Assembly: GCF_000315625.1 (NCBI RefSeq)
Contig: NW_005434653.1
Location: 785,343-849,342, forward strand
DNA: 64,000 nt
Source: Guillardia theta CCMP2712
Lineage: Eukaryota; Protista; Cryptophyta
Direction: 5' to 3'
The translations under genes were made by a program, and so were the position numbers. Below, piece by piece: positions 51,263-64,000 of this stretch. The notes under the pieces were generated by a model. The model searched no databases, had not been told where the DNA came from, and saw only the letters and a list, made by a program, of their open reading frames with translations. How positions within the stretch are numbered: position 1 is the stretch's first letter; the number at the start of each line of letters is the position of its first letter.

Positions 51263-52483
51263 CTGCCCTTGTTCACCATAATAATTGTGAAGTTTCCGGG
51301 GACGGGAGGTTAGTGTTTGAGTACGATTCAACTACTTGAAATTGCTTTTGTTTTTGTTACAGATTTGTACCATAGTCTGAAACATTTGGATATTTGGATG
51401 TATATTCGCAAATTTTCAATTAAAATATTGAAATTTTTAACCCCTTTGCCACAGTTTGATTGGACCCTTGAATGTTGTGGAGGTCGGCGTCACAGAACAA
51501 CCCCTACCCCAAGAGCCTCTACCCCTATCCGTCGTCTTCAGCCTTCAGGCCATGTTTGAGGGCCGGTACTTGTAGTACCCTACCTCCTCCTTCATCATCG
51601 ACTACCCCACAGAGGGCATATAATCCACTTGTAAAGAAATGTTTGCCAAGCACCGGTAGTTTAGGCCGGGATATGTCAGCCTCTACCGAGTTTGATTTTT
51701 ACCGTCGCTAGGCCTCCCCACCTCCCGGGTTTGCCTCAGGCTACCCGGCCCCCTCTTGGACTCTCACAGGGTACGGTCCTCGACACACACCCCGGCCCGT
51801 AAAGAACTACCCCTACCGTGCCTCCCAATTTGATCGTGGCCTACCCTGCGGCTGCCGAATCCCTTCAAGGCTTCCGAGTGACACTCTGTACGGTAGAGAT
51901 GATCTGTACGGTACGGTACATCGTCACTACACCCCCCGGGCCGTTTGCCAGTTGTCGGACTATCATCCTGACGGCGACTTAACTTTGACGGTAAAGGATC
52001 ATCCGATCAGTAAGCCGGTGGCCCGGGACTCCCGGGAGGGGGGCCGGCCCGGAAGGCCCGGGATCGGACGGGAGTCGGAGGCGGGGCCCGGAGGAGGCCG
52101 CCGCGGGCGGCGCCGCCCGGCGGCCCGGCGGGCTCAGGCTTGCCGCAAGCCTTGGCAGTGCCAAGTTGGGCCCGGGGAGACTGGGCCCGGGGGAGAGCCT
52201 CGGACGCGAGTCAGTGAGGCGAGTAAGGAAGGGGCCCGCCGGGGGGCCCTTCCGAGTCCGAGTCGGCTTGCCACGGTTGATTCATGCGGCCGCAGCCGGA
52301 CTCCGTGACATCCGTGGCGCGCGCGGCAGCCTGACGTTTCTGCAGTGCCGCGCTGAGTGCCGTGCGTGACTCTCACCGGCGGCGTCCGACCGTCAGTGTG
52401 GCCGCCGCGGGGGGCTGCCAGGGGGACTACCGTCACAGTGACTAGCCCCCGCTCACTGAAGACGGGAGTCACGCCTAGTACAC

Positions 52484-52544
52484 GGGTTTAGGGCCCGGTT
52501 TAGGGTTTAGGGACGGTTTAGGGTTTAGGCCCGCCGGGTTTAGG
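52484..52544 (+). repeat. Degenerate interstitial telomeric repeats (TTTAGGG)
   Basis: Six GTTTAGG(G) units with GC interruptions. Confidence 0.85.
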
Positions 52545-54545
52545 AGCCGCGGCCCTTACGGTAAGAGCATGCTGCCCTGCGGCGCGTAGGGAGAGCGCAA
52601 GGGGACTGGAGGAAGCTGCGAAATGATGAGAGCGTTCGCAACCTGCTGTATCGGAGATCATGCCAATACACGCAGGGCGAGCGCTCTGGAGGCCACGTCG
52701 AGGAGGCCGCCAACCTCGTCGAGAGGGTGAAGAGCTTCGCGAAGCGGTATCCTGGTAGCCTAGTAGGACAGCTCATGCTTGCAGAGCTGAGGGTGGATCA
52801 TGGATGCACTCCCGACGCTATCGCTGAAGCCATCCGCTCGACCGATGATGTCGGCAGGCGAGACGCGACCTGTTTGAAGACTCTCTGAGCGAATGGAGCT
52901 CAGAGTCGAGAGCATGGTTTAACAACAGATGGAGGAGGCCAAGAAGCAGAATGTCGAGGCATACATCGGCACTGAACTGACTTGCACCGAGGGGACCTCC
53001 TTCATCTCCAAGAAAAGTTGAAATCGAAGCTTATGGAGCTGGGTCTCATGGTAGACTCAGTCGATGGAGTCGACAAGGCCATCATGTGGAAAGCACCTTA
53101 CAGACCTGAGGCTAGTAGCACGAGCAGACGACATCTCAGTCACCGTCTCCTTCCTTAGGAATGAAGAAGCCATGGCGCTATGGGGCCGAAGGCAGGCCCG
53201 GAGAATACAGCATAGACGGCAGACGGTCGTTCAAGCTTCGAGCCAAGCGAGGACCTTGGGGCACTGCAAGGCCCGGGAGCCGCCGCCGCCGGAGCCTTGC
53301 CGAGCTATCGCAGCTCTTAGCTCTTGGAGGAATGTCGACGGCCGAGATCGCTCAGACTCTCTATCGATTTCAGCTGCAGAGGTACAACCGCTTGCTGGCA
53401 TTCTCGTGCAGGGTCCTGGGCAGCCTCCGAGGTCGCAAGGGGCCGAGCCCGAAGACGTATGTGGCTATTGGGGCAAGCACGGGAGCTCTCGTTCAGAGAG
53501 AGCGAGGCGATGGAGGGGGTGCATCTCACTCTCATCAGCGACGACGCCAAGCTCAGAGAGACGTGAGAGATCATGCGGGGCGCAGCAGCTTTAGAGTCAC
53601 GTGACAGATCAAGTCGAGGTCAAGCATGAGCACTGAGGCCGCTTCTCGAGGAAGGAGATGGAAGCCGCGGCTGTGCGGAGGAGGTAACACAAACCTCAAG
53701 CTGGTCAGCGTCGAGGTCGAGGAAGATTCACGGTGACACGCTGAGCTGGGATGGGAGCCTGATAGCTCTCTTCCTGGCGACTTGGAAGGGGTCCCCACTG
53801 TCAGCTCTCAGGAGGAAGAGGAGAGCGAGGAGCAAGCTCAGGACCCCCAAGGGCATCAGCAAGGCGCTGGATGGCTGGAGCTCAGCGACATCGACAGGAT
53901 CACCATGGAAGCAGCGTCGCCGTCAGGGCCAGTCGATCAACAGGTCTTGGTCGACCTCTCGTCGATGCTCTTGGAGACACTGATCAGAGGAGGAGCTGCT
54001 AGCTGGCAAGCTCGGATCTCCCTGGAGCTAGACAAGAGTGTTGGCAAGCTGGCAACGTGGAGTTCATGACGCTCGGAGCTTGGGCAGCCACGCCGTTGAA
54101 AGAAAAGCTCAGAGCGTACCTCGGGGAGATGCAATGGACACGGGTGCAAGGGAACAAGAAGGTCATGCAGGCAGCGAGGAGGGGCAGCGCCTTGGAGGCT
54201 GAGAGCGATGACATCGAGAGTCGATCTGTAAGCCTCACGGGCAAGGTCGACAAGCAAGACCGACTGCGGCTGACGATGAGAGATGAAGTCGAAATGGAGG
54301 CTGAGGAGGGCGAGGGCGTGGAGGAGGAGGCTGGCACAGGCCTCTCTCGCGCTTGAAGCTCGAGGCAAGTCTTAAAGGTGGACAAGAGGCAGACTCTGCG
54401 GCGGAAATGTGGGCCCCAAGGCCCGGGGGAAGGAGGAAGAAATAAACTTGAAAGCAGGTGGGCACGGGGCAAGCAACGAAGGTAAGCCTCAGGCTTGAAG
54501 GGCAGGTAAGCCGGCCGCGGTGGGCCCGGAGCCTGGGGGAGGGGG
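52545..54545 (+). mobile_element. Telomere-associated element, copy A (degenerate, 3'-truncated)
   Basis: Colinear with 60406-62700; many frameshifts; flanked on both sides by TTTAGGG. Confidence 0.7.
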
Positions 54546-54564
54546 AGCCTTTAGAGTTTGACTG

Positions 54565-54581
54565 AGGGTTTAGGGTTTAGG
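54565..54581 (+). repeat. Short telomeric tract
   Basis: AGGGTTTAGGGTTTAGG. Confidence 0.75.
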
Positions 54582-55480
54582 AGGCGCCGTTATTTTCGGC
54601 AGGCGCCAGGCGCCGTTATTTTCGGCAGCACTGCGGCATGGCTCCTCGCCAGCACGGTGTAGGGGAACTTCGGAAGCCGCCAGGGCGGCCGGCGCCAGTT
54701 GATCGGATCCGAGTGACTCTGTGACTCGGATCATCCGATGCCACCGGATGTTCAAGTTTACGCCGTTGCGTGACGCGCCCGGCATCCGCGGCCCGCCGGG
54801 CCGCCGGCCTAAGGCTGCAGTGCTATGTACGGTAACCTAGTAACTCTGACTCACTGGCCAGTGCCAGCTTCAGTACCGTCTACGTGACAAGAACTTCGGC
54901 TCTCGCTCGGAAGCCCGGCGCAATTTCGGACTGGAAGGAGTGACGCACAGAGTCCCTGGCAGACGAGTTGGAAGGACTCCGAGAAGGTTGAGACATATGG
55001 CACCGCCTCAGCAGGCCCTGAGGCAACGAGTTCGGACTTTCTTCATCCTGATCTGAACTGTCGGCGGTAGGCTACTGTCTGTACCGTACGTTTACCGTTG
55101 AAAACGGTTGTAGTGAAATTCAACGAACTGTCGGTGAAATTTGTACCATGAAAAATACCGTACAGGACACACCTGGTACTCATTTGTACCACGTCTGGAA
55201 AACACTCCGAGTCATGGTTATTTTCAGTGTACTTTCCTGAAGTGTGTCCCTGGTACCAATATTTGTATTGAAAATTTAACCAATATCTTTAAAACTAATA
55301 GTGCTATATGCTGTGCACTCCAACAAGGTCTGTCTGATTTGCTAGAAGGCTGTTGGTATTCGTGCTATAGCGAGGGAGGGAGGGGAGGGACAGGGGGAGG
55401 GACCGAAAGAGGCAGGAAGGGAGGAGGGAGGGGGGCAGAGATATATGAAGAAAGGAAAGGAGATAGGGTGATAGGGAGGG

Positions 55481-56444
55481 AGGGAGTGTGTGTGTGTCGA
55501 GGAAGGAGGCGAGGATTAGCGAGGGAGGGAGGGAGAAAGGGGAGAGCGGAGGGAGGGAGAAAGTGAGGGAGCATCTCTCTCTTTCACTCACTGGCTGTCT
55601 CTTACTCGGTCACTCTCCCTCCTTCTGTCTGTCTGTCTCTCTTCCTCCCCTCACCCCATTTCCTTGCTTGCACCCACCCTCTCCCTCCCTCTTCCTCCTC
55701 TCTCGCTCTTTGCCTGCTGCCAGCCTGCCTGTCAGTGATTCTGTCGGTCCTTCGTCCCTTTCTCTCCCTTGCTCTCCCTTTCTCTCCCTCCCCCCCCCCC
55801 CCCTCCCCCCCTTCCCCTCAAACACACACTCTTTTCCCTTCTTTATCCTTGTCTGATGCCTGCTATCCGTCTCTCACCCATTCGCTGGTTTCTGTCTCAT
55901 GTCTTGCTGTCATGAGCAAGGCAACATGCAGAAGAAGGACTGCCTATTGGATATGGGTATCAGGGTGAACGCGTCAGAACACACAGATCCAAGGGAGAAA
56001 TGAGACAAGTCAAGACTCTGTGTCTTTTTCTTTGTTTGGGTCTGATGTGCATTGTGATTACAGAGGTGAGAAGCATCTGCGTTGTTGTATCCTTGATATG
56101 ACGAGCTTTGATGTGATTGTAGGGAATAGCTGCTACTGTTGGCTGTCAAGGTTTTATTGATGGCAAGAAGAATGTCGTGCGCCAGAGCTCTTGCTTGACA
56201 TTACGAGGAGGAAGTGGTGCACCATGGAACGTGAGCGATGGTGGTTCCCCTGGGGCGAAAGAGCTCAGAGAGAAAAGTATGGGGAATGTGAATGGAATGC
56301 GCATGGAGCTAACTGGCCATGGTTCTCTCGAGGAACAAGACGAGATGTATGCAGACGAGCAGTTGGCTGTTTACAGCTCTCGTGACGCAAGAGACAAGAC
56401 AGAGAGATCGAAAAGACCACGAACTGCAGAAAGAGAGGGGCTAG
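55481..56444 (+). repeat. Left arm of ~950-bp inverted repeat
   Basis: Reverse complement of 58693-59749; same ORF translations on opposite strands. Confidence 0.95.
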
Positions 56445-56754
56445 CTAGAGGGCGATTTATCTTATTACATACATCTTGTTGATTTGGAAAATTCGGTTAT
56501 CTTTGATTCTACAGAAGTTCGATTTTTTTTGAAGTGGAACTAAGTTGCTCGTTGTGAAAGAGGTAATCGTGTACGGCATCTTGTGGAATACAAAGGATGG
56601 ACAACATGAGTGTGTTGTCATTTTTGTGTGCTAGTGGGAGCGAATGAGAGAATAATCTGTACTACCTTATCCTCTTACAATTTAGATCCCTGAGGTAGGT
56701 TAGTTTTCTTGGAGAGAATGCTTCTCTTCACATCCGACTTGTTTGCGACACGGT

Positions 56755-58858
56755 TCAGGTGGATTTCCTCACAGTGTCGGAGACAAGACCTGTAACTTCG
56801 GGCATACTAGCAGAGCTCATTTCAGAAATCTTCCTTTCTCTCAACCATAATGCATCTTCTTTTGATAGGAACATGGTGTACTGAGTGAAGTTGCACAGCT
56901 GCTGAAAATTCTCCTCGCTTGGCTCTTTTCCATCATATGTGAAAACCTGTCCTCGTGTCCAGTTCGGCAGTCCCTTATACGCTGAAGGTAGGACAAACAC
57001 AAAACATATCCTAGAAAACCGGTTCTTGGCTCGCAGAGCTTGCAGGATCTTACATAATGGCCAATACTTGATCGGATGACTATCTGCCCGTGTAATCTGA
57101 AAAATGTAGAGAACTTCGCTTTGTTTTAATGACAACGCATCCAAGAAAGGAAAATTCTTTGACTTGGGCTTGCAATATGCATTCAAATTGATCGCCCACG
57201 TTTCCATCTCGTCTTGCTTTGTCGCAAATTCAATATACGATTGCGATGTTTCCAACTTGAGCTCTTCGCACATGTATCCATTACCATTAGTCGACTGTAG
57301 ACTATGCAACGTGAAGTTTCCTCCTTTCTTCAGCAGCTGATGTGCAACGTATTCAAAAATTTGACCTGCTGCAACCTCAAATGGACTTTCAGCGGCCGAA
57401 AAAGCCTGCTCAACAAGCGAATGCCAATCGTTTATGACAATCCTGTCAAATATCTTCGTTTCAGCCTTCGTTGAACATATGCGAGGGGTTATGGTCTTGA
57501 AGTCAGAATTAGGGATCAGGTGAATTAGTTTCGATGGCATTCCCAAGTCTTGATTTATTGCCACATGCATCCTCTCCTGTAGTGATGACAAAGAACCTGT
57601 TGTCCTGATTATCTGATCAAGTGTATCTGAGGGTTTCATCACGAGATATCTTGGTACGTTTCCCCAATCCTCAATGGTCCGTGCAGCTTCTTGCTCATCA
57701 ATGCGCCCCCTATGCATCTTGATGAAGATTGACATCTCCTCGTCCGACCATACTGGTAGAAAATATCTCTGCGACACACGTTTGTTCAAAAGATCCTTAA
57801 TCGGCTGAACCCTCGGTGATGAAATTATAATTGTTTTTGCGAAATTAGTGATGGCATAGTCTCCTTTCCCATGGTACAAGTCACAGATATACCACCCAGA
57901 GAAATGTGCAAGAAGGACAACAAAAGGTTTGTCATGGAGGATCTCATTCCATTCTCCTCCATCAGAGTACCAATACTGAGGCCCTACCTGGTAGACGATT
58001 TTCTCCTTAGACCGGAGAAGCTCCATGAGTAAGTAGTACGCAAAGCACGACTTTCCTATCCCTGGAGTACCTGTGAGAATAAATGGCTTACAACTCTTTC
58101 GTGGTCCCAGTGTCTTCAACATCTCTGGATCCACCTTGAAATGTTCTGCAATTACCCGCTTCATCTCAAGATAACACTCTCGTATGAAGAGATGGTTTCC
58201 AAAATCCTCATCGCCTCCCAAGAATGTCGAAAGAGGGATAATCTCAAGAGCTGAGAAGGTCTTGCCTGAGCGTGCAATGTTCCAGAGATCGTTCAAGAAA
58301 AGTAGGATTTCGCTACCTATCAGTCCTATCAGTACATGTAATTCATCACAATTCTGCTTCACCTTCAGGTTTGGATAAATGGTCTGCAAGTTTTTCATGA
58401 CGTATATCCCTTTGTTGTTTGATCTCCAATATTTTGAGAAGCTGTATCTCCTTCTCTCGAAGCTGCTGCTTCTCCATCTCTCGAAGCTGCTTCTCCTGAT
58501 ACCAGTATTGCTCATTCATATTTGAGATGTTCCTCTCTATGATGTTCCTATCTGCCACTTCTATCTTGCTATTAACCACATCAATATCCTCCTTTACCCT
58601 TGCAATCTCCGCATTTACCCCTGCAATCTCAATTACCGTCTCATTTACTCTGGTCATCGTTGCATGGAGCTCTGCTCCCAATGAATAGCCCCCTAGCCCC
58701 TCTCTTTCCGCAGTTCGTGGTCTTTTCGATCTCTCTGTCTTGTCTCTTGCGTCACGAGAGCTGTAAACAGCCAACTGCTCGTCTGCATACATCTCGTCTT
58801 GTTCCTCGAGAGAACCATGGCCAGTTAGCTCCATGCGCATTCCATTCACATTCCCCAT
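56755..58858 (-). CDS. Crinkler/RHS-type protein: coiled-coil header + P-loop NTPase + restriction-endonuclease-fold domain
   Basis: EKQLREMEKQQLREKE header; LFIRECY; ILTGTPGIGKS; IISSP; LPVWSDEE; WGNVPR; GQIFE; PKSKNFPFLDAL; IFQIT..SHPIK; the two ORFs are joined in frame by a GT-AG intron 58362-58317. Confidence 0.85.
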
Positions 58859-59749
58859 ACTTTTCTCTCTGAGCTCTTTCGCCCCAGGGGAACCACCATC
58901 GCTCACGTTCCATGGTGCACCACTTCCTCCTCGTAATGTCAAGCAAGAGCTCTGGCGCACGACATTCTTCTTGCCATCAATAAAACCTTGACAGCCAACA
59001 GTAGCAGCTATTCCCTACAATCACATCAAAGCTCGTCATATCAAGGATACAACAACGCAGGTGCTTCTCACCTCTGTAATCACAATGCACATCAGACCCA
59101 AACAAAGAAAAAGACACAGAGTCTTGACTTGTCTCATTTCTCCCTTGGATCTGTGTGTTCTGACGCGTTCACCCTGATACCCATATCCAATAGGCAGTCC
59201 TTCTTCTGCATGTTGCCTTGCTCATGACAGCAAGACATGAGACAGAAACCAGCGAATGGGTGAGAGACGGATAGCAGGCATCAGACAAGGATAAAGAAGG
59301 GAAAAGAGTGTGTGTTGAGGGGAAGGGGGGAGGGNNNNNNNNNNNNNNNNNNNNNNNNNNNNNNNNNNNNNNNNNNNNNNNNNNNNNNNNNNNNNNNNNN
59401 NNNNNNNNNNNNNNNNNNNNNNNNNNNNNNNNNNGAGGGCGAGGGAGAGAAAGGGAGAGCCAGGGGGAGAAAGGGACGAAGGACCGACAGAATCACTGAC
59501 AGGCAGGCTGGCAGCAGGCAAAGAGCGAGAGAGGAGGAAGAGGGAGGGAGAGGGTGGGTGCAAGCAAGGAAATGGGGTGAGGGGAGGAAGAGAGACAGAC
59601 AGACAGAAGGAGGGAGAGTGACCGAGTAAGAGACAGCCAGTGAGTGAAAGAGAGAGATGCTCCCTCACTTTCTCCCTCCCTCCGCTCTCCCCTTTCTCCC
59701 TCCCTCCCTCGCTAAATCCATCGCCCCCTTCCTCGCACACACACTCCCT
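58693..59749 (-). repeat. Right arm of inverted repeat (contains upstream region and 5' codons of the CRN/RHS gene)
   Basis: See left arm; includes a 100-N gap. Confidence 0.95.
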
Positions 59750-60406
59750 TGTCAGAGGCAGCCGGGCCTTGTCAGAGGCAGCCGGGCCTTGTCAGAGGCA
59801 GCCGGGCCTTGTCAGAGGCAGAGCCGGGCCTTGTCAGAGGCAGCCGGGCCTTGTCAGAGGCAGCCGGGCCTTGTCAGAGGCAGCCGGGCCTTGTCAGAGG
59901 CAGCCGGGCCTTGTCAGAGGCAGCCGGGCCTTGTCAGAGGCAGCCGGGCCTTGTCAGAGGCAGCCGGGCCTTGTCAGAGGCAGCCGGGCCTTGTCAGAGG
60001 CAGCCGGGCCTTGTCAGAGGCAGCCGGGCCTTGTCAGAGGCAGCCGGGCCTTGTCAGAGGCACAGCCGGGCCTTGTCAGAGGCAGCCGGGCCTTGTCAGA
60101 GGCAGCCGGGCCTTGTCAGAGGCAGCCGGGCCTTGTCAGAGGCAGCCGGGCCTTGTCAGAGGCAGCCGGGCCTTGTCAGAGGCAGCCGGGCCTTGTCAGA
60201 GGCACAGCCGGGCCTTGTCAGAGGCAGCCGGGCCTTGTCAGAGGCACAGCCGGGCCTTGTCAGAGGCACAGCCGGGCCTTGTCAGAGGCACAGCCGGGCC
60301 TTGTCAGAGGCACAGCCGGGCCTTGTCAGAGGCACAGCCGGGCCTTGTCAGAGGCCGCACAGCCGGCCGCCTTGTCAGAGGCACAGCCGGGCCTTGTCAG
60401 AGGCAC
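59748..60406 (+). repeat. 20-bp (some 22-bp) tandem array TTGTCAGAGGCA(CA)GCCGGGCC, ~32 copies
   Basis: Direct inspection; forms the 5' end of element copy B. Confidence 0.95.
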
Positions 60407-63103
60407 ATGCTGCCCTGCGGCGCGTAGGGAGAGCGGCAAGGGGACCGGTGGAAGCTGCGAGCAAGAGGTTTGTATCGTTCAAACAGCTACCTAAGCATGG
60501 TACTACAGTATGATGAGAGCGTTCGCAACCTGCTGTATCGGAGATCATGCCAATACACGCAGGGTGAGCGCTCTGGAGGCCACGTCGAAGAGGCCGCCGA
60601 CCTCGTCGAGAGAGTGAAGCCTTCACCAAGCGTTATCCGAATAGTCGGACAGCTCATGCTTGCAGAGCTGAGGGGGGATGCACTCCCGACGCTATCGCTG
60701 AAGCCATCCGCTCGACATGTCGGCAGGCGAGACGCGACCTGTTTGAAGACTCTCTGAGTGAATGGAGCTCAGAGTCGAGAGCATGGTTTATTCAACAGAT
60801 GGAGGAGGCCAAGAAGCAGAATGTCGAGACATACATCGGCACCGAAGGCACCGAGGGGACCTCCTTCATCTCCATGACTCTCCTGGGCATCTCCTCGATG
60901 TTTGTTCGACAAGAAGACAAATTGAAAACAAAGCTCATGGAGCTGGGGCTCATGGTAGACTCAGTCGATGGAGGCGACAAGGCCATCATGTGGAAAGCAC
61001 CTTACAGACCTGAGATAGCACGAGCAGACGACATCTCAGTCACCGTCTCCTTCCTTCGGAATGAAGCAGCCATGGAGCTATGGGAAGGCAGGAAAGAATA
61101 CACTATAGACGGCAGAGCGTTTAAAGCAACGGAAGTCAGCATAGCACACGGCTCTCGGAGGAATGTCGACGGCCGAGATCGCTCAGATTTATCGATTTCA
61201 GCTGGTCTCGCAATCTCTTGCAGCCGCAGAGGTACAACCGCTTGCTGGCATGCTCGTGCAGGGTGCTGGGCAGAGAGGTCGCAAGGGGCCGAGCCCGAAG
61301 ACGTATGTCGCTGTTGGGGCAAGTACCGGAACTCTCCAGCAAAAAGAGCTAGAGTGGGTGCTGAGCTCGCCTTCGACGGCAAGTTGCGAGCAGACCTTGG
61401 CCTCGTTCAGAGAGAGCGAGGCGATGGAGGGGGTGCACCTGACCCTCATCAGCGACGACGCCAAGCTCAGAGAGACGTTTGCAGTCGAGCTCACAGCCGA
61501 CACCTTCGTTCCTAGGGGAAAGATCGCTAAGCAAAGGAGGGCACTTCGCGAGAGAGATCATGCGGGGCGCAGCAGCTTCAGAGTGCAGATCAAGTCGAGG
61601 TCAAGCATGAGCACAGGCCGCTTCTCGAGGAAGGAGATGGAAGCACTGTGCGGAGGAGGTAACACATCGATCACGAGAGTCAAGCGAGCCATGTTGGAAT
61701 TAGCAAGAAGGATAGGCGTGACGCCGGTCAGCGTCGAGGTCGAGGAGGATCGTGACACGCTCAGCTGGGATGGGAGCCTGATAGCTCTCTCCCTGGCGAC
61801 CAAGGCAGAGGCTCGACGCTTGATGGACGACATGCACTTCTACTTGGAAGGGATTCTGGAAGTTAAGCTGGAAGCTATGGGTTTTAAGCTTAACCCTCAG
61901 CATGAGGAGGAGAGGAGCCCGAGCAGCGAGGAGCAAGCCCAAGAGTCCCAAGGGCAGCAGCAAGGCGCTGGATGGCTGGAGCTCAGCGACATCGACAGGA
62001 TCACCATGGAAGCAGCGTCGCCGTCAGGGCCAGTCGATCATGGCAACAGGTCTTGGTCGACCTCTCGTCGATGCTCTTGGAGACATCAGAGGAGGAGCTG
62101 CTAGCTGGCAAGCCGATCTCCCTGGAGCTAGACAAGAGTNNNNNNNNNNNNNNNNNNNNNNNNNNNNNNNNNNNNNNNNNNNNNNNNNNNNNNNNNNNNN
62201 NNNNNNNNNNNNNNNNNNNNNNNNNNNNNNNNNNNNNNNNNNNNNNNNNNNNNNNNNNNNNNNNNNNNNNNNNNNNNNNNNNNNNNNNNNNNNNNNNNNN
62301 NNNNNNNNNNNNNNNNNNNNNNNNNNNNNNNNNNNNNNNNNNNNNNNNNNNNNNNNNNNNNNNNNNNNNNNNNNNNNNNNNNNNNNNNNNNCGATCTGTA
62401 AGCCTCTTGTATCTTGCGATCAGTAAATTTGCTGAGCACCATGGGTTGAGCTGCACGGGCAAGGTCGACAAGCAAGACCGACTGCGGCTGATGATGAGGG
62501 AGGAAGTCGACATGGAGGCTGAGGAGGGCGAGGGCGTGGAGGAGGAGGCCGGTGCAGGCCTCTCGCGCGCTTGAGGCTCGAGTCAAGTCTTAGAGGTGGA
62601 CAAGAGGCGGAGCGGAGCTGTGGGCCCCAAGGGGGGAAGGAGGAAGAAATAAAGCAGGTGGTCATGGGGCAAGCAACGAAGGTAAGGGCGGGTAAGCCGG
62701 TCGGGGAGGGGGGAGGGGGGGCGGGTGGAGGAGGCCGGGCGGCGGCCGGCCGGGCCCTAGGGCCCGGTCCGGACCGAGGCCCGGGGGAACTTCGGCTGGG
62801 ACGTGAGTCCCAGGGACCCATCCACAACCCACTTGCCACCGGGCCGAGGAAGCAACACAAGCAAAGCACGGACGACCCAAGGCAAGGCCAGCGGAGGAAA
62901 CTCCACTGGCTGAGGCCGGGGAAGACCACTGAAGTATATCAGAAGAGGGAACAGAGCAGAAGCACGGCTGCCATAAGGGCCAGCCAAGTCGGGCCGAACT
63001 GCCAGGTCACGAGATCCCTGTTAGACTAGAATAGTGCAAGGTGATAACAAGCCATGCAAACTACCTAGCATTCTAATAAACTCAACTACTACTACTACTA
63101 CTA
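59748..63103 (+). mobile_element. Telomere-associated non-LTR-like element, copy B (ORF1-like frame ~60497-62574, frameshifted)
   Basis: 5' array, broken ORF, AATAAA at 63075-63080, (CTA)6 at 63086-63103 running into TTTAGGG repeats. Confidence 0.75.
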
Positions 63104-63140
63104 GGGTTTAGGGTTTAGGGTTTAGGGTTTAGGGTTTAGG
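63102..63140 (+). repeat. Telomeric tract (TTTAGGG)~5
   Basis: Perfect repeats. Confidence 0.95.
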
Positions 63141-63612
63141 ACCGGGCCCGTTGACAGAGGCACCGGGCCCGTTGACAGAGGCACCGGGCCCGGCGTTGAC
63201 AGAGGCACCGGGCCCGTTGACAGAGGCACCGGGCCCGTTGACAGAGGCACCGGGCCCGTTGACAGAGGCACCGGGCCCGTTGACAGAGGCACCCCGGGCC
63301 CGTTGACAGAGGCACCGGGCCCGTTGACAGAGGCACCGGGCCCGTTGACAGAGGCACCCCGGGCCCGTTGACAGAGGCACCGGGCCCGTTGACAGAGGCA
63401 CCGGGCCCGTTGACAGAGGCACCGGGCCCGTTGACAGAGGCACCGGGCCCGTTGACAGAGGCACCGGGCCCGTTGACAGAGGCACCGGGCCCGTTGACAG
63501 AGGCACCGGGCCCGTTGACAGAGGCACCGGGCCCGTTGACAGAGGCAGACCGGGCCCGTTGACAGAGGCACCGGGCCCGTTGACAGAGGCACCGGGCCCG
63601 TTGACAGAGGCA
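63141..63612 (+). repeat. 21-bp tandem array GTTGACAGAGGCACCGGGCCC, ~22 copies
   Basis: Direct inspection; forms the 5' end of element copy C. Confidence 0.95.
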
Positions 63613-64000
63613 TGCTGCTCTGTGGCGCGTAGGGAGAGCGCAAGGGCACCGGAGGAAGCTGCGAGCAAGAGGTTCGTATCGTTCAAACAGCTTTCTAAGC
63701 ATGGTACTACAGTATGATGAGAGCGTTCGCAACCTGCTGTATCGGAGATCATGCCAATACACGCAGGGTGAGCGCTCTGGAGGCCACGTCGAGGAGGCCG
63801 ACCTCGTCGAGAGAGTGAAGAGCTTCACCAAGCGTTATCCGAATAGTCGGACAGCTCATGCTTGCAGAGCTGAGGGGGGATGCACTCCCGACGCTATCGC
63901 AGAAGCCATCCGCTCGACATGTCGGCAGGCGAGACGCGACCTTTTTGAAGACTCTCTGAGCGCATGGAGCCCAGAGTCGAAAGCATGGTTCCCAGCGCCA
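63141..64000 (+). mobile_element. Telomere-associated element, copy C (continues beyond window)
   Basis: Colinear with copy B; frame from ATG 63701 (MVLQYDESVRNLLYRR..PDAIAEAIRSTCRQARRDLFEDSL..) is open to the window end. Confidence 0.75.

Follow-up and report, generated by a model that had tools for sequence, protein, structure and literature searches.

A Guillardia theta chromosome end with a probable inverted segmental duplication that yields an expressed truncated copy of a Crinkler/RHS-type gene

We analyzed a stretch of 64,000 nucleotides of nuclear DNA from the cryptophyte alga Guillardia theta CCMP2712 (contig NW_005434653.1, positions 785,343 to 849,342; in the following called the window), in which a gene for a Crinkler/RHS-type NTPase-nuclease is bracketed by two inverted arms. 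Most likely, this arrangement arose through a local, microhomology-mediated inverted segmental duplication, which became fixed at a chromosome end and was later broken and healed. In such an event, an inverted copy of the 5' region of the gene would have been attached, at a palindromic CTAG microhomology, to the DNA 310 nt past the stop codon. The duplicate in the left arm kept a working promoter and working splice sites and now constitutes a separate transcription unit with a spliced, polyadenylated mRNA, for which a leader-only product of 141 amino acids is predicted. The locus is a rearrangement scar that yields an expressed truncated gene and it is neither a new mobile element nor a demonstrated silencing device.

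Inverted arms and soundness of the assembly

A reading made from the letters of the window (the sequence-only reading) had described inverted arms on both sides of the gene, and both a repeat search and blastn recovered these arms at exactly the same coordinates. The left arm (55481-56444, plus strand) is an inverted copy of the 5' region of the gene and comprises CT-rich upstream DNA, exon 1, intron 1, and the first 107 codons of exon 2. It is 97-99% identical to the reverse complement of the right arm (58693-59749, minus strand), which is the 5' region of the intact gene. The copied region amounts to 964 bp and the two arms are separated by a spacer of 2248 nt (56445-58692, minus strand), which involves the 3' flank, the 3' untranslated region, and most of the gene body. 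This spacer is single-copy, with a flat DNA depth of 78, and when we searched the genome (87.1 Mb, 669 contigs) its 3' flank was found elsewhere only on contig C463. The inner blocks of the arms (55807-56444 vs. 58693-59330) extend over 638-644 nt at 99% identity in both searches and differ at two substitutions only (56076 T/C, 56428 A/G). For the outer CT/GA-rich blocks (55481/55516-55794 vs. 59437-59749), 97-99% identity was determined, with a few indels at the extreme edge. The proposal that the right arm stops where a 20-bp tandem array begins was also borne out, since TRF placed this array at 59747-60405, with a 3-nt overlap with the end of the arm.

The right arm involves an assembly gap (N run, 59335-59434), which is located in a poly-C/G tract of its CT-rich upstream region and lies outside the coding sequence. 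Because the gap is 198 nt upstream of the start codon at 59137, it is irrelevant to the reading frame. Both of its flanks are colinear with the unbroken left arm, in which about 12 nt (55795-55806, a C-rich homopolymer) correspond to the gapped interval of 106 nt. Moreover, an RNA contig that carries the right-arm alleles (55765 C, 55770 G) ends at the gap in a loose end of CCCCCCCC. Judging from the left-arm colinearity and from this loose end, the gap most likely represents a short unread homopolymer.

A gap within one of two near-identical arms, in repeat-rich DNA close to a scaffold end, might indicate an assembly artefact, in which a collapsed or folded-back scaffold join around the gap simulates the repeat. 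The sequence-only reading had itself named mis-assembly as a finding that would overturn it. We placed contigs and reads from four public runs (X1, X2, X3, X24) on positions 55600-58692. The X1 run (2021) behaves as DNA, with flat depth over introns and intergenic DNA and zero splice joints. In this run, a single contig of 2342 nt (record 7, depth 78.2) starts at 56398, crosses the left junction, covers the full spacer up to 58692 and continues for 47 nt into the right arm; it spans both inner junctions and contradicts a mis-assembly there. Independently of this contig, the left junction was crossed in two further runs, by record 10 of X2 (56398-57013) and by record 14 of X3 (56398-56491); the additional evidence for this junction comes from a 2011 run and from RNA contigs. 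The opposite-strand joint of 56444 to 58692 was present in X1, X2, and X3. The X1 depth over the arms (108-132 vs. 78 over the spacer) is near that of two copies, poly(A)-tailed RNA reads are specific to the left junction, and there are fixed differences between the arms. Since independent DNA and RNA contigs cross the inner junctions, we do not consider the repeat an assembly artefact, and hardly any probability remains for that explanation.

At position 56076 of the window, the reference sequence carries T in the left and C in the right arm, yet X1 and X2 show C alone. Either contig building merged the two arms at this site, or the T is wrong in the reference or reflects a difference between culture lines, and in this second case the arms would be even more alike.

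The left arm as a separate transcription unit

The coding sequence of the full gene (56755-59137, minus strand) consists of three exons and the spliced model encodes 759 amino acids in frame. Exon 1 (59137-59072) has a signal-peptide-like sequence and is followed by intron 1 (59071-59015). Exon 2 (59014-58363) encodes a low-complexity region and a coiled coil, and exon 3 (58316-56755), which is separated from it by intron 2 (58362-58317), encodes the P-loop NTPase and the nuclease-like domain. A 586-amino acid open reading frame at 56755-58515 on the minus strand corresponds to exon 3 of this three-exon gene. Both splice sites were confirmed by a Guillardia transcriptome protein (P0016), which is identical across them, and both introns are spliced out in the RNA contigs of X3. 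The full gene is expressed, with an X3 depth of 54-67 vs. 93 for the truncated copy. Its mRNA has its 3' end near 56645, where record 15 of X3 starts and where, in the same bin, the minus-strand reads of X24 begin.

The truncated copy (56000-56482, plus strand) consists of exon 1 (56000-56065), an intron (56066-56122), and a shortened exon 2 (56123-56482). According to its translation, it encodes 141 amino acids, 129 of which are common to the full gene and 12 of which are new (ARGRFILLHTSC), and ends with a TGA stop codon at 56480-56482. Removal of the intron can be seen in record 13 of X3, a region in which contigs cannot tell the two arms apart. In contrast, record 14 of the same run (depth 93), which extends from 56398 across the junction to 56491, is specific for the left arm. 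X24 is a raw-read RNA run from a 3'-biased library, of which about 6% was read, and here the depth of sense reads was 75 at 56328-56431 and 28.8 at 56432-56535. Three raw X24 reads carry about 12 non-templated A residues after 56491, the position at which record 14 of X3 also ends. These data place the poly(A) addition site of the truncated transcript at 56488-56491 (plus strand), 9 nt after the stop codon.

Between the two convergent 3' ends, there is an untranscribed gap of about 150 nt (56492-56644), in which the X3 depth was 0 (56536-56639) and the X24 depth did not exceed 0.3. Since the left transcript ends at 56491 and the mRNA of the gene near 56645, with an X3 depth of 0 in between, the two units converge without overlap. 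The sequence-only reading had suggested a convergent-promoter or hairpin arrangement that silences a toxic gene, and these data confirm its first half, since transcription starts from an active promoter in the left arm and is directed at the gene. Under the silencing hypothesis, antisense or read-through RNA from this promoter, together with small RNAs, would hold down the toxic nuclease gene. The aim of the promoter is consistent with such a mechanism; in the 3'-biased library, the left transcript reached a depth of 75 compared with 2.8 at the 3' end of the gene, and the arms could form a stem of 960 bp if they were co-transcribed. However, the 3' ends do not overlap, and in the fraction of X24 that was read we detected neither plus-strand reads over the gene body nor minus-strand reads over the left arm. 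Neither of the two units showed antisense reads. Furthermore, the gene is expressed at a depth not far from that of its truncated copy. Thus, silencing by the left arm appears very unlikely.

Junction, chromosome-end setting, and origin of the duplication

The novel junction (GGGGCTAG|CTAGAGGGCG) contains an 8-bp palindrome (CTAGCTAG, 56441-56448), which lies over the end of the arm identity (56444/56445). On contigs C30 and C3, there are paralogues with about 73% identity in exon 1, intron 1, and exon 2, and in these paralogues the common region passes into the gene body just as in the right arm. Because of this continuation, right arm and spacer together represent the ancestral gene, and it is the left junction that is derived. 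A remnant of a once-complete second gene was not found, since there is no inverted similarity at 56445-56900. A contig from a related strain (L022) is 93% identical and stops at 56569, 125 nt short of the left junction, so that its coverage does not extend to the repeat.

The last position of the window is also the last position of its contig (C21), and the locus is therefore located 4-8 kb from a scaffold end. It is surrounded by head-to-tail copies of an element of about 2-2.7 kb (element T; 52549 to about 54570, 60436 to about 63100, and from 63640 on). TTTAGGG tracts precede these copies (52487-52545, 63107-63134), with a remnant at 54567-54582, and all telomere repeats at the locus point right. 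The 20-bp array that adjoins the right arm (plus strand) is the 5' array of the T copy starting at 60436. The next copy has the same layout, with four TTTAGGG units, a 21-bp array (63141-63612), and the element from 63640. Throughout the genome, T copies close to the start of a contig are on the minus strand and those close to its end are on the plus strand, so that they point outward. On the proximal side, the left arm is preceded by flank X (54583-55480, plus strand), a repetitive fragment that directly follows the TTTAGGG remnant and has many partial copies at contig ends. Taken together, scaffold end, TTTAGGG tracts, and the layout and outward orientation of the T copies bear out for this locus the subtelomeric, putatively retroelement-associated setting that the sequence-only reading had mentioned for trypanosomes. 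Subtelomeric enrichment of the gene family as a whole was not demonstrated, since besides this locus C28 alone lies within about 12 kb of a T copy. For two more paralogue loci, C134 and C14, the nearest matches to flank X are a few kb away, and several other loci have a clearly internal position. Rfam returned zero RNA families for positions 52000-64000.

Two relatives of the structure were found on other contigs. The first one is a unit on the 6.3-kb contig C463 (C463:2045-2941). In it, the 3' end of intron 1 and a decayed exon 2 lead into the same left junction, beyond which the 3' flank is present as far as window position 56687. This flank is directly followed by the upstream region of the right arm (about 59295-59717) in right-arm orientation. 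The unit is 80-86% identical to our locus, with 83% for the shared left junction, its truncated gene copy carries an in-frame stop codon in exon 2 as well as deletions, and at the junction there is a single CTAG (TCTAGA). It is a degenerate copy of the inverted-repeat unit that lacks the gene body and the exons of the right arm. The endpoints of its deletion (window positions 56688 and about 59295) lie about 40 nt inside each end of the transcribed region of the gene, and the left breakpoint is marked by a 15-nt tandem duplication (gaactttgattgtag).

The second relative (C193:1-3300) consists of a T copy, flank X (54583-55480) at 93-99% identity, and the first 53 nt of the arm, after which (TTTAGGG)9, a 19-bp array, and another T copy follow. 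This arrangement is a clear case of a break in the same purine/pyrimidine tract that was healed by de novo telomere addition.

The junction is common to C463 at a divergence of about 15%, while the arms at our locus differ by about 0.3%. It follows that the arms were either homogenized by gene conversion or copied again. Gene conversion probably keeps them at about 99% identity, as suggested by the diverged C463 copy. Primate Y-chromosome palindromes and plastid inverted repeats are kept uniform by arm-to-arm gene conversion. The Guillardia arms resemble these systems in that they are about 99% identical although the paralogue with the same junction has diverged by about 15%. They differ in their very small scale, with only one gene involved, and conversion between the Guillardia arms is putative.

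The sequence-only reading had considered, as one of two options, a mobile unit with long terminal inverted repeats. The NTPase-nuclease module of CRN and RHS proteins has been proposed to descend from transposons. A DNA transposon carrying the CRN-like protein as cargo or transposase would explain why inverted arms of 960 bp surround a gene with such a module and why a unit or its remnant exists at a second locus (C463). However, the arms are made up of the gene's own promoter, exon, intron, and partial exon, and the flanks (ATAGGGAGGG vs. TTGTCAGAGG) do not form a target-site duplication. We also searched the genome for further arm copies and for pairing around CRN genes, as had been recommended, and found the full arm only here; apart from this one pair, there is one degenerate remnant. 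None of the 13 paralogue loci with flanks of at least 1.5 kb (about 4-7 kb for two loci) is bracketed by an inverted repeat. Finally, the outer end of the arm is a natural flank in one case, whereas in the other it is a breakpoint at which the telomeric element array follows. The transposon was rejected for the missing target-site duplication, the single arm pair, and the 13 unbracketed paralogue loci, and its probability is close to nil.

The most likely route to the inverted duplication is a replication template switch (U-turn) between two CTAG sites that are 2.25 kb apart, which may have followed fork stalling or breakage. The nascent strand, which was copying flank X and the arm, would have stalled in exon 2 at CTAG and re-annealed at the CTAG beyond the 3' end of the gene on the same-sense strand. 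From there, synthesis would have turned back across the gene and the arm and given rise to a dicentric chromosome. This chromosome would have broken in the fragile purine/pyrimidine tract, and fusion with an array of telomere-associated elements might then have healed the broken end. Alternatively, the unit may have arisen at another chromosome end and may have been moved here by subtelomeric exchange. Replication U-turns form palindromes at short inverted repeats in yeasts.

Fold-back inverted duplications that lie next to terminal deletions have spacers of 766-70,466 bp, inverted microhomology of 2-8 bp, and telomere healing (Hermetz et al., 2014; PMC3907307). The Guillardia locus resembles them in its arms around a few-kb spacer of single-copy depth (2248 bp), in the inverted microhomology at the junction (CTAG within the palindrome at 56441-56448), and in its place at a chromosome end. 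The healed distal end of the published cases is represented by C193, whereas at our locus the right arm stops at an element array. Additional differences include the arm length of just 0.96 kb, the contiguity of the spacer with the distal arm, and the capping of the distal end by a telomere-associated element array instead of bare telomere repeats. Moreover, the Guillardia structure is a fixed germline feature of an alga and yields an expressed truncated gene.

Several observations weigh against the inverted duplication as outlined above. The 4-bp microhomology at the junction could be chance. The spacer is contiguous with the distal arm, whereas in a classical fold-back product it is contiguous with the proximal arm, and because of this difference, a U-turn or template-switch variant, or formation elsewhere, is needed. 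The right arm is capped by the 5' array of an element with no TTTAGGG in between. Gene conversion is deduced from one diverged copy only, the function of the 141-amino acid product is putative, the whole 4.3 kb lack any spanning long read, and the right arm holds the assembly gap. A classical intrastrand fold-back with the present telomere orientation was considered and rejected, since the gene and its paralogues assign the spacer to the distal (right) arm.

For the truncated copy, there is also the possibility that it is a selected new gene and not a by-product of the rearrangement. A leader-only protein that is secreted or targeted to an organelle would in that case cooperate with the full-length protein or counteract it, for instance as decoy for the targeting route. 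The copy is spliced and polyadenylated, its abundance equals or exceeds that of the full gene, it has an intact open frame with a new stop codon, and the C463 unit indicates that the arrangement is older than the arm identity suggests. However, the C463 copy carries an in-frame stop and deletions, as expected of a neutral by-product. Moreover, the region common to both proteins is of low complexity without a recognizable domain, and the 3' untranslated region comprises only 9 nt. Under this reading, gene conversion or selection would keep the promoter of the copy matched to that of the gene. We consider such a selected function unlikely.

A more far-reaching variant holds that the quasi-palindrome is a maintained two-gene module, in which a toxin-like NTPase-nuclease and its leader-only partner share an identical promoter by gene conversion, and in which the short product or a rare hairpin RNA restrains or escorts the full-length protein. 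Such a module would represent a toxin-antidote-like pair within an array of telomeric retroelements. The cycles of breakage and healing recorded on C193 and C463 would then be the way in which this gene family diversifies in a free-living alga. On the present data, we regard this scenario as quite improbable.

If the duplication arose as proposed, the locus provides a clean sequence-level record of a chromosome-end inverted duplication that was fixed in a protist. In this record, the junction can be identified, the distal break has probably been healed, C193 and C463 represent two paralogous by-products, and there are signs of gene conversion between the arms. It also indicates that a single step can be sufficient to turn a promoter-plus-leader fragment into a new, expressed transcription unit. 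Of greater interest are the fixed fold-back-like structure, whose by-products are found at other chromosome ends, the likely gene conversion, and a putatively signal-peptide-bearing Crinkler/RHS-like gene family that resides partly in telomeric element arrays.

Protein family and alternative splicing of the gene

The protein has, in this order, a signal-like start, a low-complexity region, a coiled coil, a P-loop NTPase (GTPGIGKS, WYICD), and a C-terminal domain. Its N-terminus (MRQVKTLCLFLCLGLMCIVITE) is signal-peptide-like by inspection alone. The signal-peptide-like first exon (56000-56065 in the left and 59072-59137 in the right arm) is common to a subgroup of paralogues consisting of this gene and those on C30 and C3. 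In a cryptophyte, such an exon could target a protein to the secretory route or to periplastidal or plastid compartments.

In 17 homologues, the Walker A motif (GTPGIGKS) and the Walker B-like motif (WYICD, hhhhD pattern) are nearly invariant. A Pfam search identified nSTAND3 in 16 of these homologues (best E-value 8.5e-7) and, as weak matches, RHSP (PF07999) in seven of them (best E-value 0.013); for the protein of our gene, both matches were sub-threshold only. Searching the PDB by sequence gave nothing useful for the protein. When compared with PDB structures, the NTPase region matched P-loop and RecA-like folds at Z-values of about 7. With Foldseek against the PDB, the whole model gave generic AAA+/STAND matches only, and for the C-terminal domain nothing was found below an E-value of 0.07. 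The ESM-Atlas features of the protein gave their highest score (0.98) with a "Crinkler family" cluster, followed by RHS (0.94) and a Crinkler N-domain cluster (0.91). In a fold search, the AlphaFold model aligned with Crinkler and RHS clusters at TM-scores of 0.45-0.51 over 312-334 residues.

The C-terminal domain folded alone with a pLDDT of 78.7. All of its long PDB alignments were to PD-(D/E)xK nucleases at low Z-values (5.1 over 143 residues for N.BspD6I and 4.0-4.3 for Avs3, McrC, NucS, SwaI, and SdaI). Its conserved residues (E37, D108, Q122-x-T) are not those of a textbook D/ExK motif. A Crinkler header (PF20147, LxLFLAK-type) was not detected, since there was no Pfam Crinkler match in the first 250 amino acids at E ≤ 0.1. 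From these comparisons, the protein is predicted to have a Crinkler/RHS-type C-terminal module and is not a canonical CRN. The family assignment of the sequence-only reading holds for the kind of family, as the ESM-Atlas features (0.94-0.98) and the fold similarity suggest.

The genome contains at least 45 sequences that match this protein, among them many fragments. As with the CRN effectors of oomycetes and chytrids and the RHS proteins of trypanosomes, the family is multi-copy with many fragments and pseudogenes, and according to the models, all three would have in common a C-terminal module of a P-loop NTPase and a restriction-endonuclease-like domain. The setting is also alike, since this member is subtelomeric among retroelements. 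In contrast to CRN proteins, the Guillardia protein lacks the Crinkler header (LFLAK N-terminus) and instead carries the signal-peptide-like exon, the low-complexity region, and the coiled coil. Moreover, its host is a free-living alga and many of the paralogues are located inside scaffolds and not at their ends. Trypanosome RHS genes likewise live among telomere-associated retroelements, and the locus adds a cryptophyte example of Crinkler/RHS-like genes in such surroundings. Among the papers searched, there was none that links Crinklers or RHS proteins with Guillardia and none on its nuclear subtelomeres.

Three paralogues (C176:21010-25662, C11:1091745-1096406, C14:14243-18895) are 98-99% identical over the entire 4.2-4.6 kb retrieved, including the flanks. 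Because the identity extends into the flanks, the gene sits there in a larger, recently copied unit.

The full gene has an alternative intron of 124 nt (57863-57986, minus strand; joint 57862-57987, CT..AC) inside the NTPase region. In X3, the depth was 45 for the spliced and about 83 for the unspliced form, so that roughly one-third of the X3 transcripts involve this splicing event. The same intron is used in the MMETSP protein P0016 (C-terminus). Its removal leads to a frameshift and the protein ends at 361 amino acids, before the Walker B motif. Such unproductive splicing may limit the amount of a harmful protein.

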